Notes: generated from the sequence alone by a model not told the origin. A DNA stretch of 64,000 nt from Chlorokybus atmophyticus (GCA_009103225.1 RHPI01002204.1:62001-126000), one strand, 5' to 3'. Numbered from the stretch's first letter, positions 18,702-54,068 are shown. Numbers and translations are program-made.

Positions 18702-19649
18702 CCTGGGAGATTCCTAGAGTGAGCTGGAGACCCCTGTCTGTTCGTTTTATGATCAAGTTGTCGTCAGAATTGCAGGTACTTTCGCCCAGGTCCTTCCGTT
18801 CAGCTGCGTGCTGTTCTGTCAAGCGCAGCGAGGGCACACCTGCTCATCTCATATACATATCGCGCGTCATTCTTTCCGGCCAGCATGCGGCCGCTTTACA
18901 GCTGTACAGTATGGTGTAAAGGCTAGCAGCAGTCTAGTTATAGTCGTCTATTCGTCTGTTCCACTTTAGCTTGCTCTTCGTAATAGTTACCCTTTAGTGT
19001 TGCCAGTGTTGCCATCTTACCCACTGAGTGACAGGTTGACAACATGCTTTGTTGTTCCGTCTGTTATTGTGCTGCCAAGCCCATACGTAGCTCATACGTA
19101 TGTTTCGCTGGCTGTTTACATTAATCCAAGATACCAATGCAGTATGCATCATGATGCGTTGCATACGCGCAATATGTTGCCGCAGACAGTGGCACACATG
19201 CTCGACCACCGCGCTACTACCTTCTACCACTAGCAATTCTACCTATAGCACTACGGCCCGACCCCATCAGTCATGCATGCAGCTTGGCCGTTATTTGCCG
19301 CAGTGTACATATGCGAAACGGCAATGCACATGCATAGTGGCATGCACAGTCAGCAGCTGTGTGTAAAGGATATGCGCGGTGCCATTAAAGTAGTCACTGT
19401 GATAATTGGTATACCATGCACTAGTTAGGACATGGACAAGCAGCAGCAGAGCACCACTAGGCTGTGCTATAGCATGTATTTCAACTCACTACTCTCACCA
19501 CTAGTAAGAAAACAAACTACTTGTCATTAAGCACAGACGTACAGTGGGTACCAGTCATGACCATGGCTGTCTAAGCGCACACATAACAGCAATAACGTCC
19601 TGCACAGAGCCACGCGGCAGCGGCACCCATGTGAGCAGGTACTAACTGA

Positions 19650-19826: not shown

Positions 19827-22167
19827 GCACGCTAGCACGCAACTAGTACTCTACCTACCCACAGGCTGCCCCGTTGGCCATGCATACATGTAAAAGAAAA
19901 TACCTGCCGACAGGGCTGTTCGAGTCAGTGTGTATTGTTGTAGAAAAGATGCGTTTGCAGCACATCTACTACATTGTCACTGTGCATGAGCATATCCCTC
20001 GCGCATTGTATGTACATTAGTAAAACGATAATGCAATCTACTAGCATAGGTTAAAAGAGAGGGTCCCCCACAAGCAAGCATACCAGCCACCGCACGTCAT
20101 ATCATCACCCACAACTAACAGTTCACACCAGGGCACAAACCCTAGCGCTAAGGGGGCTGGCTAGCTAAGGAAGTGCATGCCAGCAAGTTGAGGATTGAGA
20201 AGGCAGGCGCAGTAGCTGTAGCTGCAGAATATGGCGTAGGCACAGAGGAGAAGGAGAGGAAGAGGTTAGGTCCTGACTCGGACTGACCAGAACCACGACC
20301 ACACAACCAGCCCCCTCGCCGCCCGTTGCTTGCTGCCGCGATCTGAAGTTCTGTCACTCACAACTCACAGCGGCTGCAGGCCATTCGCATAGCCATTAGA
20401 CATACACGTAGGGCACCAGTCGTGCACGATCAGCGGGCACGAAATGCTCCCCACCGGTGTGTGCATACATGCATACTTACCTCACTCACCTCATACCTAT
20501 CTCACCCACCAATGATTATCCCACCTGCGGTGTCGCTGCAGCCGTGCAATTGCTTAAAACAAGTGCCTGTAAGTGCCATCAAACACAAACCCTGGCCTGG
20601 ACTACACCATAGCACGCAAATGAGACAACAAAGTTCTCCTATTGTAGCTTATCGCATGCATGTCGTTCAGGAGGCGTGTGATTTCTTCCAGGAAATGAGC
20701 ACGGTATGTCGATATCCTCAACAACCTACAGCACTATCACATCGCCACATTTTGCTTTGTAGCTCGAGCAATATCTGAGGCTGGATGCAGTGCCCTCATG
20801 GCCGGGACCCCGACGAATGCTAGCTCCCTACGCTTACTGTACAAGCGTGTCTTCACACCAACATATCAGGATGTACACATGATGTTAACCATGACACATG
20901 ATGTCAAGAATTGTAGCACACATGCGCATAGCAAACAGTACATGACTTTCAGTATTCCGAAAAACAAGCATTGTGAATAACACCCATAATTGGTTGAGCT
21001 TGTGACAATGTTCAATTGTCCACTATAATTGTGATTGCTTCATTGACGTTTCATAATTTCTGCATGCATTACATGTCAATGCTAACACGTGATGTTAACG
21101 TCCATTGCACATATGCGTGTGTCACAGTTTCCTCTCAATCTTGTAAACAACAATTAATGTTGGAAATATACATCACATCTTATTGAATTCGAAACAATTG
21201 TCATGGTTTTTGCCCAATTAGGCTTTGTGCCGCTCAAATTTTAGCATTATAACATTTACTACTAACGTGCTCCGTGAGGTGGTTTGTACGCGGTACTTCA
21301 TCATGTTCATTGCATGACAACATCAAAATCGTAGTTAAGCATTATTATGATCAACCATGAACAGTTGCACAACAGTTGTACAGCATGATTGTGACCTCGT
21401 ATTGTTTCAATGTCGTAAAAAGCACTCTTTTTCCTCTATTAACAAGCTTAATGTAAATTACAGCAATATTAACGTTTGTACATGCTACATGTGACCAACA
21501 CATCAATGGCGCCCTTTACTACATGAATGAACGCGTGCATGCATGTTTGAGAAACTGGCTCCTGATGTTAGACCTCGCCACTTTGAGCAAGCACAACGCG
21601 CGACACATTGACAAGCCCTCTACATAAGCACGACAAGAGGGTGGCAAACACTCCCAGCGCCTGCCACTTGGCGCTCCATCAGAATGCAGTCACGTCAACA
21701 AAATCGCTGTACGCACCCAATGTAATCGTTTTCATGCTCACATCCCTACAGTGCACCCGTCGAAAACTGCCTTTAGGAATGATGGATTGACAGCCCCAGG
21801 CATGCATGCCTCCATGCATGCACTGTGTGCTGATGGCCCGGTCGTCCGGCGGAGACTCTTTGACGCCTGCCATCAACCTTGAACAACCGTCTCATTCGAG
21901 CAAGCCGTTCAAGTCGTGCATACGTGGTTATGGGTGTTTGTGCTGCTGAGCTCAGCATACCCATAAGGCACATACCCACAATCACATGTACACCAAGACT
22001 GTCACAGACAGCACGTTCACATTGACGGACTGCCAGCCGCTTGACAGATGGGGCGGGCGCTGAGATGGGCGCTTGCTGCCAGCACAGGAAACGGCGGCTG
22101 GAGAGCCTCAGCCTGCTGCCAGCTCTCCTTGCAGGCATGCCTCTGCTGCGCAGCAGAGTGGCTGACT

Positions 22168-22698
22168 TCAGTCGCGCTTGAGCTTTGTTGCTGATGACAC
22201 ACAGTGCATTGTAGAAGAAGGCGGGCGAAAAGGAGAAGATTGATTCAAAGCTTCTGGCTGTGCTGACGACGGCTGTGCTCCGCTAGGCTTGAATAACAAG
22301 AAACAGGCTGAAGTAAACACGCACGGGGCTCTTGAGCAGCCAGTAAGCTGAGCTGTGTGCGCCTTGGGCCTAGGCTGGGCCGGCGCTGGAGCGAGGAGGA
22401 GCGGGACGGGGCGGTTACACGGTGTTGAAGCCTCAGTCTTGGGGCCGCAATGGCTTGGGTGGACAGCGAGCTCTTCCGCTGGCCTGCACTGCTTGGTGAG
22501 TACTGGGCTTAGCTCCCTGGCCGTCATGCCGAAAGTCTTATCTCTTGACAGCTTTTTCAAGCAGCTGCGTACCTTGAAGTGCGCAGCTGCTTGAAGCTGG
22601 ATCGAGCTGCTGTTCGCACGCCAAGCTGAAGCTGAGTCATGTACCTTCAAGCTGCTGTGGTGCTTCAACGCTGTTCTGAGTAATCTCAGCAGCTTCAA
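22168..22698 (-). CDS. Unidentified 176-codon open frame, possibly an exon of an unknown gene divergent from the B3 gene
   Basis: Long stop-free frame with a plausible in-frame upstream exon (MLRSYPPP..DKL|gtaact). No recognisable domain. Confidence 0.2.
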   Translation of the reverse strand: MKLLRLLRTALKHHSSLKVHDSASAWRANSSSIQLQAAAHFKVRSCLKKLSRDKTFGMTARELSPVLTKQCRPAEELAVHPSHCGPKTEASTPCNRPVPLLLAPAPAQPRPKAHTAQLTGCSRAPCVFTSACFLLFKPSGAQPSSAQPEALNQSSPFRPPSSTMHCVSSATKLKRD

Positions 22699-23176
22699 CA
22701 GTATTGAATTGTCACAAGCACGTACGTTGTCGTGGCGGCTTTGCCTTTAGACATAGTTACCAGCTTATCTGTGCTGCGAGTGTGTGTCACAGCAGTGTTC
22801 GGCCGATCAAAGGGGTTGCCAGTGTTTAGTGTCAAGTGGAAGCTAGGGTCGGCAGCTAAGGGGGGGGGATATGACCTGAGCATTGGACTTGTACTGTCTA
22901 CAGTGACATTTCTCTTCAAGACCCTTCAAGCATGCCATGGCACTCTGGCTCCAGTATCATTCGCAGCACTGTGACTTGGCAACGTGCAAGTCACAGTGCT
23001 GCGAATCTCGGCAGTATGCTTGCCACTAATCGATATGACTGGTCGATTTTGCCACTGCTGTATGCATAGGTACCAACAGCCTGCTGTAACAATGCCAATC
23101 TTGCAACTTGTTGAACAGCCAGCATGAAGTACGCAGCAACACATAAGTGACAAAGTGGTTGATGTGTCGTGTGCAG

Positions 23177-26100
23177 ACGCGCCGCCCCCACTGGTATTTG
23201 ACCCAATACCTGAAGCGGGCAACTTGCCACAATGTGACACAAACACCTGCAACCTAGTCAACATAGTCAACAGCAAGAGCGCAGCACTGGACGACGCACC
23301 AACTCTGCCGGATGTGGAAGCTGCGCTGGCAATTGAAACCGAAGTGGAGACGGCTGCGCTTGATGCTCGTGCTCAGGCCGTCGAGCAAGACGCCAACCGC
23401 CAGCTGGAAAGAAGGTTGTCCGAGCAACTTGAGAAAGGTGAGCGTTTTGTACAATGCCAATGTGCACACGATGTTGCACTCTGTGCCCATCTCCCAACAA
23501 TATGTGACATTCATATCTGCAGTGGACCTTGCTTCGCCCATGCCTGGGGAAGCAGCTACGGCTTGTCCTGGCTCAAGCCTAGAGCTGGACGACTTGTTTC
23601 CGGCACTCGCCTCGTGGGGCAATGGAAACGACGAGCTGGCATCAATCAAAGACCAGGAAGAAGACGAGCCCAGTTCAAGGTTACCACCAGCCTCAAAGCC
23701 TCACGCCGATGCTGCGTGCAGCACGCATTCACTGTCAACATCTCATGTACGTGTCAACATGCCATGTCACAAGTTATCGTGATGGTCTTGCGCTGTTCAA
23801 TAAGCGTGATGTTGGCTGCAGGATGACATGGATGTTGATCAGTATCAAGATGAGGTCTTCTGCAACGGCAATGCAGCTTCGTCACCGCGCCTGCGGTCAG
23901 TGTCACTAGCCTTCACTAGCGATGAGCAGCAGGACCAGACCAGAAGGAGTCGAGAACCTGGCATTCCCGCCGCCAGGCCCTTCAAGGACAATGTGAGTCA
24001 TTGCGGGACTGACTGACTTGGCATTATACACGTGAGCTACAGTTTGACTGTATGGGTGACATCGTATGATACTCAGACACGCATCATGATCTGGAACACC
24101 ACGACCCACAAGCGAGCTGGTGGTCGGGGCTTGTCAAGGAGGAACCTAGAGGCCTATCTGGAGCAGGTAGGTGTGTTACGACTGGAAACTTTGCGTTGAA
24201 TATAACGCCGTTGCTAACGGCCGCGTGTTGCTACAGCATCCTGAGTGTGTAATCTACAACAAGCATCTGCACAGGAAAGTCGCCGCTGTTGCTCCCGCTG
24301 CCATGGAAGAGGCGAAGGAGGTTTGAGCCTTCATGAAGCTTGATCACTAATTGTTACTGCAGATAATGATTGATTACAGCTGCATAACCATGCTGCAGGC
24401 GCCCTCTCAACAACAGCAACAACTTGAAGACGAAGTGCCAACACATGCAGGCAAGCCCACTGAGTAATCTGTGTATAGAAGACTGCAATTCAGAAGATGC
24501 CAACACTCTCGGAGCAGCTAAGCCTGGGCTTCTGCTCAAAACAAAAAATACACATATGCTGTTCATGTGCGCACACACCGTGTGTGGCACGTGCACGCCG
24601 CTTGCATGGGCGGTCACAACAACTGACTTGGCAAGGTGTATTTCGATGCAGGCCATCCTCCCAAGAGGCGAGGCCGCCCGCCAAAGAAACACAGCAAGAG
24701 GACAGTGATACTGGTTGAGCGCGAAACGCAGACACCTGCTACCCTTGATGATCACGCAATGACCACACCAGAAGTACTGCGCACTGCAGGAACAGACAAT
24801 GCCACGGGCAGTTACAGCCAACAGCAGCAGCAGCAACAACAACAACAACAACAAACACAGCAGCAACAAGAAGAAGAACAGCAACAACAACGACAAGGAC
24901 AAGAAGCACCTGTGCTTCAGAATCTGCAACCTCACATGAGCGCAGCAGCAGCAGCGGTGCAGCCTGCAGTTGCACCACGGCGACAACACATGGATGCCAC
25001 CAAGCGGCGCCGTGTGGTCAGTGGTATCATTGTCTGCAAAGTTTGTGTATGCGATCAGCAACATGCTGTCCATGATTGCAAGACAATAGCGGCTGAGCTG
25101 ACTGACAATGCATGCTGGCAGGCCAAGTTAATGGATTTTGCAACACGAAGGAACTGGAGCTCAGGTGGATTGCAGCACCTGAAAGAAGCCAAGCTGTTGT
25201 GCCGGCAGATGGGCATGACGCAGCGACAACTGCAGAAGTGGATCACCAACCACAGCCCTACCGCAGTGAGCAACTGATTACGAATGCACCATGGTACCTA
25301 CATTCCATACAAGCTAACGCTGTGCGTCGCGACCATCTGAACATTGCAGAAGAGGAAAGCAGCGGAGAAAATGCAAGGCGTCAGTGCAGGTGCATGCCTC
25401 TCAAAACTCGCTTAAAGCGCTTTTGCTGATAGTGCACCACAGAAGGACTCTCACCATGCTTGTGTGGCAAGCCATAGTGGTGACTCTGCAGGTGACGCTT
25501 CTAGCAAGAGCATGCCGGAGGATATCGTGCGCCCCAAAGCCAGCACCAAACACTCTGCAAAGCTGAAATCTTTTGGCGGGAGAATTGCAAAGGCATCTGC
25601 GCTTGCACGTGCGCGGGCAGGGCTTGTGCGCGCGAGGGCAGCCATGGAGCACGCTAGAGCCGCAAAGGCAGCCAAGCATGTATTGAAGCACAGCGCCTCA
25701 CGCGGAGAAGGTCGTGACTTTGTTGCACATACATGTGACTCACATACGCCGGTCGAAAGCAGCACAAGTGCTCAGCCGCAGCCTCTGAGGTTATTCTGCC
25801 AAGGCGAGACCAACGATGAGGCTGCAGATATTGACTTCGTCCCCGCTTTAAGGAAGAAAGGAAGGCCTCGACGTCTTGCGGTAAGCTGCTGTATGCTGTC
25901 TTGAGTTGATGTGCATGCCACGAGCATCAGGCCTATTCAGCAACTAAGCTTGCACGTACTGTAGAGACTTGGCATGATCCATCAAATGCCTGTGCTATTC
26001 AAGAAGCAGTTGACGTCAAGCGACATCAACCACTTGGGTCGCATTGTTCTTCCAAAGGTGCATACTCTGTAGTAGTAGGCCACCGCATCAATTGGCATGC

Positions 26101-26978
26101 CCATAGTAGCTTCTGCAGGCGTATCCTACTGCTTGTGTGACAGCTGCTGACGCGCCAGAGTGACCGCTGCTAACGCGCCATCTCATTTGCAGAGTCTAGC
26201 AGAGAGTTACCTCCCCAGCATCGACAAAACAGGCATCTCCTTGAAGCTCAATGATGCAAGCGGTGGAGAATGGAGCTTCCGCTATCGGTGAGCAATCAAA
26301 CAGTGCACATGCCGGATACCTATGCCTCGTTGTAATGCACGCAATGCACGACTCCATCCTTGATTGTTGGCATTGCTGATGCTGATCACGAGCTGCATGG
26401 GTGCTGCGCAGCTGGTGGCCGAACAACGCCAGCAGGATGTATGTCCTCGAGAGAGCAGGTATGGACGCACGCAAGTCGCAGGCATTGCCTGAAAGGTTCA
26501 CCCTGATACAGTGTGTTACAGTCACAATGATGCTGTCACACGAGCTCAAGCCAGCTCGGTCACACACTACACCCAGCCTATGTGTGCGTGTGTTGATGCT
26601 CACTAACTGTGACAGCATCAGACACTTGAGCACATTTAATGACTAGCAGCCACACAAAGCAAAGACATAGACATTGCGCATGTCTATGCTTGCCTGGTAC
26701 AAACATCTTGATAGAACCTGTCCAAGAGCTTGCCCAACAACCCAACCTTGCAGGCGCTTTTCTGGACGCTTTCAACCTCGGGAGGGGAGACACAGTCATC
26801 TTCCTACGCGCGCACAACGGCAAAGTGGTGGGTGGCTCAACTATATGGGGAAATGCCTGCAGAAGAGCTGAGCACAAGTTCCACTGCGCTTGATAACGCA
26901 TGTTATCACTTGCAGGTGCTGGACGGGCGCAAGTGCGTTGGCCGTCGCCAGAACGCTGAGCACAACAGCCTGCAGTAG
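23177..26978 (+). CDS. LAV-class (ABI3/VAL-related) B3 transcription factor with BRK-like domain, AT-hooks, polyQ and ZF-HD-type homeodomain; 5' end unresolved (possible first exon near 22933-23013)
   Basis: Phase-compatible exon chain. B3: LFKKQLTSSDINHLGRIVLPK|SLAESYLPSIDKTGISLKLNDASGGEWSFRYR|WWPNNASRMYVLERA|GAFLDAFNLGRGDTVIFLRAHNGKV|VLDGRK. AT-hooks PKRRGRPPKK and RKKGRPRR. Homeodomain-like exon 25122-25265. BRK-like exons 24077-24166 and 24237-24320. Confidence 0.85.
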
Positions 26979-27734: not shown

Positions 27735-27906
27735 NNNNNNNNNNNNNNNNNNNNNNNNNNNNNNNNNNNNNNNNNNNNNNNNNNNNNNNNNNNNNNNNNN
27801 NNNNNNNNNNNNNNNNNNNNNNNNNNNNNNNNNNNNNNNNNNNNNNNNNNNNNNNNNNNNNNNNNNNNNNNNNNNNNNNNNNNNNNNNNNNNNNNNNNNN
27901 NNNNNN
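27735..27906. other. Assembly gap (N run)
   Basis: Run of n. Confidence 1.
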
Positions 27907-53417: not shown

Positions 53418-54068
53418 NNNNNNNNNNNNNNNNNNNNNNNNNNNNNNNNNNNNNNNNNNNNNNNNNNNNNNNNNNNNNNNNNNNNNNNNNNNNNNNNNNN
53501 NNNNNNNNNNNNNNNNNNNNNNNNNNNNNNNNNNNNNNNNNNNNNNNNNNNNNNNNNNNNNNNNNNNNNNNNNNNNNNNNNNNNNNNNNNNNNNNNNNNN
53601 NNNNNNNNNNNNNNNNNNNNNNNNNNNNNNNNNNNNNNNNNNNNNNNNNNNNNNNNNNNNNNNNNNNNNNNNNNNNNNNNNNNNNNNNNNNNNNNNNNNN
53701 NNNNNNNNNNNNNNNNNNNNNNNNNNNNNNNNNNNNNNNNNNNNNNNNNNNNNNNNNNNNNNNNNNNNNNNNNNNNNNNNNNNNNNNNNNNNNNNNNNNN
53801 NNNNNNNNNNNNNNNNNNNNNNNNNNNNNNNNNNNNNNNNNNNNNNNNNNNNNNNNNNNNNNNNNNNNNNNNNNNNNNNNNNNNNNNNNNNNNNNNNNNN
53901 NNNNNNNNNNNNNNNNNNNNNNNNNNNNNNNNNNNNNNNNNNNNNNNNNNNNNNNNNNNNNNNNNNNNNNNNNNNNNNNNNNNNNNNNNNNNNNNNNNNN
54001 NNNNNNNNNNNNNNNNNNNNNNNNNNNNNNNNNNNNNNNNNNNNNNNNNNNNNNNNNNNNNNNNNNNN
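53418..54068. other. Assembly gap (N run)
   Basis: Run of n. Confidence 1.

Follow-up and report, generated by a model that had tools for sequence, protein, structure and literature searches.

A stretch of 64,000 nucleotides from the Chlorokybus atmophyticus genome (GCA_009103225.1, RHPI01002204.1:62001-126000), referred to here as the window, carries on its plus strand between positions 23177 and 26978 a chain of exons that is probably one nuclear gene of a streptophyte alga encoding a homeodomain-AT-hook-LAV B3 transcription factor. The C-terminal B3 domain most resembles those of the land-plant LAV proteins (ABI3/VP1, FUS3, LEC2, and VAL1-3). It is preceded by a divergent homeodomain that is the best-supported new part of the gene and whose nearest class, judged from profiles and a predicted model, is ZF-HD/PLINC. 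Because the same two domains recur in the same order in annotated proteins of Klebsormidium nitens, the homeodomain-then-B3 pairing is an old architecture conserved across early streptophyte algae rather than a one-off.

The chain comprises 15 exons (E1 to E15) that were chosen by eye and checked by script. Their phases are compatible, the introns (63-295 nt) include 13 of the GT-AG type and one GC-AG, and the 2,231 coding bases are free of stop codons up to a TAG at 26976-26978. By its sequence, the region reads as a eukaryotic, intron-rich gene. An earlier note, made from the sequence alone, had proposed such a phase-compatible chain, and every peptide it quoted was found in its place. The chain would encode about 745 residues, to which the missing N-terminus must be added. 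Acidic, low-complexity sequence in the N-terminal part (E1-E3) would be followed by a 58-residue segment of unknown fold (E4-E5), a first AT-hook and a polyglutamine (polyQ) tract (E7), the divergent homeodomain (end of E7, E8, and perhaps E9), a basic linker with a second AT-hook (E10), and the B3 domain (E11-E15). Such a protein would be a transcription factor with sequence specificity, its B3 reading CATGCA. The AT-hooks may add minor-groove contacts that steady the protein on flanking AT-rich DNA, the homeodomain may contact DNA at a second point or present a surface to a partner, and the acidic and polyQ regions may function in activation.

B3 domain and homeodomain

The B3 domain is divided among five exons. 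E11 (25965-26057) encodes the N-arm (LFKKQLTSSDINHLGRIVLPK), E12 (26193-26287) the middle strands, E13 (26412-26458) the C-arm, (R)WWPNNASRMYVLE, and E14 (26754-26827) the C-terminal strands; E15 (26916-26978) completes the domain and ends in the TAG stop codon. All database searches, folds, and alignments were run exon by exon, which for the B3 part means single exons of about 31 residues. When compared with the PDB, E11 and E12 matched B3 chains only, with LEC2 as the best match for E11 (positions 9-32, E-value (E) 0.0067) and VAL1 as the best match for E12 (positions 30-60, E 0.0034). E13 matched LAV chains only: FUS3 (positions 59-74, E 0.0027), then LEC2 and VAL1. The matches of the three exons are colinear in B3, as expected of the C-terminal LAV-type B3 that the earlier note had recognized. 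Pfam did not detect B3 on these short exons, and E14 alone had no match in the PDB.

A B3 hidden Markov model (HMM) built from the Klebsormidium relatives and run against the window covers E14 as well. Its only matches lie at 25995-26063, 26193-26288, 26389-26487 and, weakly, 26750-26827. They span model positions 2-95 in order over four exons (2-24 in E11, 23-55 in E12, 47-79 in E13, and, weakly, 70-95 in E14). The length of E14 also equals that of the corresponding Klebsormidium segment. E15 was placed by phase and stop codon, and its GKV|VLDGRK parallels Klebsormidium GHLILNDRR. The B3 domains of the Klebsormidium proteins score higher against FUS3 (90 bits), LEC2 (87 bits), and VAL1 (80 bits) than against RAV1 (52 bits), NGA1 (45 bits), or ARF (29 bits). 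Since these scores favor LAV, E13 matches FUS3, LEC2, and VAL1 only, and the best matches of E11 and E12 are LEC2 and VAL1, the C-terminal B3 is, on these comparisons, LAV-type, with RAV, ARF, and REM less close to it.

The structure of VAL1 bound to DNA assigns roles in DNA contact to individual residues (PMC5934628). Exon alignments show that K297, S302, R309, V311, K314, R347, W349, N351, N352, and M356 of VAL1 are kept in the window B3, whereas R306 is replaced by H and I307 by L. All of the residues that contact bases of the Sph/RY element (S302, R309, V311, W349, N351, N352, and M356) are thus present, and binding of the B3 to Sph/RY (CATGCA) is a well-grounded prediction from this conservation. 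In the whole window, the RY hexamer CATGCA occurs 239 times, compared with 137 +/- 11 expected from shuffles, and overlapping clusters lie at 19272-19281, 21536-21545, and 21801-21822, 1.4-4 kb upstream of the gene. Autoregulation through RY elements was considered and rejected; the hexamer is enriched window-wide and not inside the gene.

Land-plant LAV proteins differ from the window protein in their accessory domains. Pfam found no PHD, zf-CW, or other accessory domain on any exon, in contrast to the PHD-L and zf-CW of land-plant proteins, and A1/B1/B2 and EAR, judged by eye only, were not found either. The earlier note's statement that this protein does without the land-plant accessory domains is thus supported. 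No land-plant LAV protein is known to have a homeodomain or AT-hooks (PMC6599366).

E8 (25122-25265) encodes the end of helix 1, helix 2, and the recognition helix of the homeodomain. Its sole match in NCBIfam is TIGR01565, the ZF-HD homeobox (E 2.7e-5). An HMM of the homeodomains of the Klebsormidium family scores 50.5 bits at 25119-25259, its only such match in the window, and E8 aligns in register with DLX3 and Lhx9. In comparisons that covered solved structures only, profiles built from 4 and from 10 sequences both placed 1WH7, an Arabidopsis ZF-HD homeodomain, first in the PDB (E 1.7e-4 and 3.7e-4, respectively, over the full length); with the larger profile 1WH5 ranked second. All other matches listed for the 10-sequence profile, and most of those for the 4-sequence profile, were homeodomains, and the next best class after ZF-HD reached an E of only 0.017-0.06.

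Structure prediction led to the same class. The AlphaFold (AF2) model of E8 consists of three helices (residues 2-9, 21-30, and 34-44), and its predicted local distance difference test score (pLDDT), which was 72 when 4 sequences were used, reached 88.6 when 10 were. Among the top 50 Foldseek matches of this model 49 were homeodomains, headed by 1WH5 and 1WH7 at a template modeling (TM) score of 0.69. VIA-align gave 1WH7 a Z of 5.3, with a root-mean-square deviation of 2.2 and 47 of 48 residues aligned, and all 50 rows shown were homeodomains. Other homeodomains lie within 1 Z of 1WH7 but align only 43 residues. The window homeodomain shares with ZF-HD/PLINC (1WH5 and 1WH7, its best sequence and structure matches) a long loop that follows a conserved W and connects helices 1 and 2, a Cys residue within helix 2, and the K.W..N pattern of helix 3. 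Of the signature residues W48, F49, N51, and R53, the first and the third are kept; I stands at position 49, and S, followed by P54, at position 53, where the Klebsormidium relatives have R.

Some results for E8 count against the homeodomain reading. The TIGR01565 score is 24.0 bits against a cutoff of 57.45, and the weak Pfam match to Homeobox_KN (E 0.011) reaches 16 bits against a gathering threshold of 24. The Foldseek E-values are not significant, the query of 48 residues being too short. F8 and Q12, which are usual in helix 1, are absent from the splice model, and S stands at position 53. The low profile scores and the unusual residues at positions 8, 12, 49, and 53, together with a proline at position 54 that shortens the recognition helix, would fit a homeodomain-like exon that has decayed into a helix-turn-helix without DNA binding, serving as a protein-protein module and leaving a plain B3/AT-hook factor. 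We consider this possible, if somewhat unlikely. W48 and N51 and 12 invariant positions are common to all Klebsormidium members over a deep divergence, and the predicted model is confident. Moreover, the homeodomains of ZF-HD proteins also depart from the typical form, and DNA binding is nonetheless reported for them.

On the strength of the profiles and the model, we conclude that E8 encodes a genuine homeodomain, with ZF-HD/PLINC as the nearest class. By its sequence it is ZF-HD-like and not a member of the ZF-HD family, because the score falls far below the TIGR01565 cutoff and the zinc finger is missing: Pfam found no ZF-HD_dimer (PF04770) on any exon or on the Klebsormidium relatives. The window protein thus differs from ZF-HD/PLINC factors in having its homeodomain fused to B3 without the finger. 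The ZF-HD-type homeodomain of the earlier note is accordingly retained as to nearest class and not as to family membership.

Intron 7 (25017-25121) separates E8 from the basic KRRRV end of E7. This 105-nt intron is in frame and stop-free, so that E7 and E8 lie within one continuous open reading frame (ORF, 24636-25277) with or without its removal. A normal donor (GTCAGT) and a branch-like CTGAC motif 16-24 nt before the acceptor make a genuine intron probable. If retained, it would add 35 residues, with five Cys and two His (..CKVCVCDQQHAVHDC..), directly before the homeodomain. No alternative acceptor inside intron 7 that would restore a helix 1 with F8 and Q12 fits. Downstream, E9 (25350-25379) is a possible mini-exon (KRKAAEKMQG) predicted from splice sites and phase; it is optional, a direct splice from E8 to E10 also being in phase.

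Relatives in Klebsormidium and the linkage of the two domains

A search of 1.84 billion representative sequences with E8 returned seven matches, none of them a self match, of which two (P0005 and P0006) are real. The other five (P0001-P0004 and P0007) were taken as artefacts of repeat proteins. Repetition is plain to see in P0001 and in P0007, the latter carrying a ..VCRQLG.. word, and the call for P0002-P0004 comes only from multi-stretch or zero-stretch rows. In P0005, P0006, and P0008, a longer member of the cluster, a single long ORF contains the entire homeodomain (RMRFTPQQQ...KKWISNHRPKE). In the contigs that encode them (L001-L003), this homeodomain ORF is followed, 1.8-3.3 kb downstream and in the same orientation, by LAV-like B3 exons. 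The first 6,000 positions of L001 (1-6000), a Klebsormidium-like metagenome contig, hold retroelement ORFs (RVT_1 and zf-CCHC) upstream of the homeodomain-B3 gene.

A word search from P0008 led to annotated proteins of Klebsormidium nitens. KFL_000730220, KFL_002190030, and KFL_001150030 (kfl00073_0220, kfl00219_0030, and kfl00115_0030) each combine in one protein a TIGR01565 match and a Pfam B3 above its cutoff, and are named only "TF-B3 domain-containing protein". A fourth, KFL_008480040 ("Homeobox domain-containing protein"), has the homeodomain only. Across the relatives, TIGR01565 scores are 20-26 bits, and PF00046 scores 11.7 bits on P0006. A word search with the family alignment for further taxa returned Klebsormidium-type proteins only.

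Like the window protein, the Klebsormidium proteins have a ZF-HD-like homeodomain upstream of a C-terminal LAV-type B3. The homeodomains are 38-44% identical, with 12 invariant positions, and the C-arm FRYR(F/W)WPNN.SR.YV.E is common to both B3 domains. The Klebsormidium proteins differ in that they lack AT-hooks, polyQ, and a segment like E4-E5. Their genes are also intron-poor, with the homeodomain in an exon of 1.4-2.4 kb, whereas the window gene is intron-rich. Outside the two domains, the correspondence ends. The N-terminal, inter-domain, and post-homeodomain motifs of Klebsormidium are undetectable in the window, and block HMMs of AEVEAAL, RKLSRLASLD, EMEVDQ, YSEAALR, and RKLKDFDP remained at background at the expected exons. 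Orthology therefore rests on the two domains and their order.

Nine B3 proteins of K. nitens were found with Pfam and cloned from cDNA by Tounosu et al. in 2023 (PMC10272232). The primers for kfl00115_0030, which were used on cDNA, run from MTSEGTVQ to HELKSF* and span both domains (PMC10272232). The homeodomain is not mentioned in that paper, which also states that the RY-binding factor of Klebsormidium is still unidentified. An internal CAGE (cap analysis of gene expression) start-site cluster of kfl00115_0030 (P0015) is upregulated by indole-3-acetic acid (IAA) without cycloheximide, from 0 to 30.9 counts per million (CPM; P 0.0024; PMC10272232 Supplementary Data 1). We found no paper in the literature that describes a homeodomain-B3 fusion, so the pairing is apparently undescribed though present in the public Klebsormidium annotation. 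The earlier note had called the architecture unrecognized. This holds for the literature and not for the annotated proteins of K. nitens, in which the same pairing occurs.

These proteins also bear on whether the window holds one gene or two. An AT-hook/homeodomain gene ending at about 25400 could be followed by a separate B3 gene from about 25440, with frames that fit by chance. No RNA junction connects E8 to E11, and the K. nitens paralogue KFL_008480040 is annotated with a homeodomain only, as two genes would allow. However, the three annotated K. nitens proteins hold both domains, and the cDNA primers span both. The gap between E8 and B3 in the window is only 700 nt and is filled by an open exon of 146 codons in phase (E10, 25443-25880). 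Apart from internal Met codons, nothing in E10 or E11 ahead of the N-arm of B3 stands out as a new start, and an RNA contig described below stops exactly at the E10 donor. We therefore regard two adjacent genes as unlikely, and from the phases of the exons infer a single transcript for the part from homeodomain to B3.

RNA evidence, AT-hooks, and the N-terminal half

Contigs of three sequencing runs (X1, X2, and X3) were compared with 4,901 letters of the window. X2 proved to be genomic DNA, since its contigs pass through introns. X3 includes a spliced contig of 187 nt (record 13), with a similarity of 90-95% to the window, that links the last 18 nt of E4 (24077-24166) to E5 (24237-24320), E6 (24399-24450), and the first 30 nt of E7 (24652-25016). 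Allowing for ambiguous letters, its breaks fit 24166|24237 and 24450|24652. The skip at the latter break is 201 nt long, with 8 ambiguous letters, and fits the GC-AG intron at 24451-24651 (G|GCAAGC), which is thereby supported by a spliced contig of a related copy. At the break between E5 and E6, the aligner left 15 letters unplaced on either side. These comprise an in-frame GCG insertion inside E5, the last 11 bases of E5 as in the window, and one further base that, with the first two aligned letters, forms an additional GAG codon at the E5|E6 join. The differences between contig and window are in-frame indels of 3 nt, a pattern suggesting that a second copy, or the gene of a sister species, is under coding constraint. 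The X3 contigs as a whole (24146-24721), from another sample of the study, show expression and splicing of a 90-95% identical copy; this copy could be a paralogue or belong to a sister species.

X1 yielded contigs that are 100% identical to the window. One of them stops exactly at 25880, the predicted donor of E10, before GTAAGC. Another skips 24784-24909 and 25034-25178. Both skips read CT..AC on the plus strand and CAG|GTGCT ... TGCAG| on the minus strand, and because both have minus-strand splice signals, they reveal a spliced antisense RNA (24483-25252, minus strand; introns 24909-24784 and 25178-25034) that overlaps E7 and E8, the polyQ and homeodomain exons. The first antisense intron excises exactly the antisense of the polyQ repeat. 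The antisense transcript was rejected as a coding gene; its exons have no protein-like frame.

Several of these observations speak against a single, expressed sense-strand gene. The identical-sequence RNA contigs over E7 and E8 derive from the opposite strand, and in runs X1 and X3 no RNA junctions were seen for E1-E4 or from E7 onward. The RNA check for one transcript, which the earlier note had proposed, thus supports the junctions from E4 to E7, in a related copy, and no others. No match to the gene's own protein was returned by a word search with the E7-E8 ORF or by the search of 1.84 billion representatives with E8. The chain also has no start codon: E1 (23177-23437; acidic and low-complexity, with an open frame, a cag| acceptor, and a |GTGAGC donor) enters in phase 1, and there is no in-frame ATG before E2. 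For this reason at least one upstream exon with an ATG must be missing. The sole ATG exon with a good phase-1 donor, at 22450-22495 (MAWVDSELFRWPALL), had no support and was not adopted.

A locus that is decaying or silent, with antisense non-coding RNA as its only product, would account for the antisense splicing of the identical X1 contigs over E7 and E8 and for the absence of a self protein from the databases. Against this, all 15 exons remain open and in phase, the contact residues of B3 are all intact, the related copy is sense-spliced with in-frame indels only, and one X1 contig stops at the sense donor 25880. We judge a silent gene very improbable.

The two AT-hooks lie on either side of the homeodomain. 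KRRGRPPK (24663), part of KRRGRPPKK at 24663-24689 in E7, and RKKGRPRR (25851-25874), in the basic, alanine-rich linker of E10, are the only strict-pattern matches in six frames of the 64-kb window. Both are in the reading frame of this gene, with a GRP core flanked by Lys/Arg. The polyQ tract of E7, at 24819-24902, is a tandem CAG/CAA repeat. Hooks and tract were both features of the earlier note, and both are there. The two GRP-core motifs with basic flanks resemble those of AT-hook proteins such as HMGA and AHL. The window protein differs from these in having no PPC/DUF296, and its hooks are accessory to two folded DNA-binding domains.

E2 (23523-23746) and E3 (23822-23992; DDMDVDQ...) were predicted from splice sites and phase. 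The resemblance of DDMDVDQ in E3 to Klebsormidium EMEVDQ is not significant, nor is the likeness of E4 to the Klebsormidium LSDETVSALREQ motif. A wider N-terminal homology to Klebsormidium (VEAALA, SLD..L..LSW, and DDMDVDQ) appeared colinear by eye and was dropped, as block HMMs against the six-frame window were negative.

E4 (TRIMIWN...AYLEQ) and E5 (HPECVIY...) form the segment that the earlier note had likened to a BRK domain. If it were a genuine, very divergent BRK domain, the protein would be a four-module reader of chromatin and DNA. Its letters (RI.I.N ... L..YL..HP.C.V) are like those of the BRK pattern, and E4 and E5 are joined in real spliced RNA (X3). The Pfam BRK model is, moreover, too conservative for divergent BRK-like sequences (PMC9113485). 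Nevertheless, the likeness to the BRK of CHD7/8 and Brahma (PF07533) is at the level of letters only. Searched separately, neither E4 nor E5 had a Pfam match, to BRK or to any other family, at E up to 10 or any match in the PDB, and E4 had none in NCBIfam or in Atlas. Structures of the BRK domains of CHD7 and CHD8 should be in the PDB. No counterpart of E4-E5 was found in the Klebsormidium relatives. With the two exons searched separately, these negatives weaken the BRK assignment, which we hold to be very improbable. The resemblance is most likely due to chance or to a lineage-specific segment. The BRK-like domain therefore drops out of the earlier note's "up to four modules", three types of which (B3, homeodomain, and AT-hooks) remain.

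The surroundings of the gene hold two inverted repeats upstream of E1, a perfect one of 20 bp with an 8-nt loop (22959-23006) and one of 17 bp with a 6-nt loop (22556-22595). Runs of N, which mark assembly gaps, lie at 27735-27906, about 750 nt 3' of the stop codon, and at 53418-54068.

Evolutionary meaning

LAV B3 factors (ABI3, FUS3, LEC2, and VAL) are regarded as one plant-specific family, and ZF-HD factors as another. One published survey traces the origin of HD-PLINC to the streptophyte ancestor (PMC7027972), and another to Klebsormidiales plus Phragmoplastophyta (PMC11712027). The homeodomain-B3 proteins suggest that canonical ZF-HD factors may have arisen from a homeodomain-B3 ancestor by domain shuffling. 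It is tempting to speculate that the streptophyte ancestor carried a PLINC/ZF-HD-type homeodomain on a LAV-type B3 protein and the zinc finger elsewhere, that canonical ZF-HD factors arose when the homeodomain moved beside the finger, and that land-plant LAV proteins arose by loss of the homeodomain. We regard this full scenario as doubtful. If it is true, a single ancestral gene would lie behind two families of plant transcription factors.

The presence of a homeodomain-B3 protein in two of the earliest streptophyte lineages provides a testable candidate for the distribution of these domains before land plants. The homeodomain-B3 proteins are also candidates for the RY-motif binding factor of Klebsormidium, the subject of a study in which these very genes were cloned (PMC10272232).

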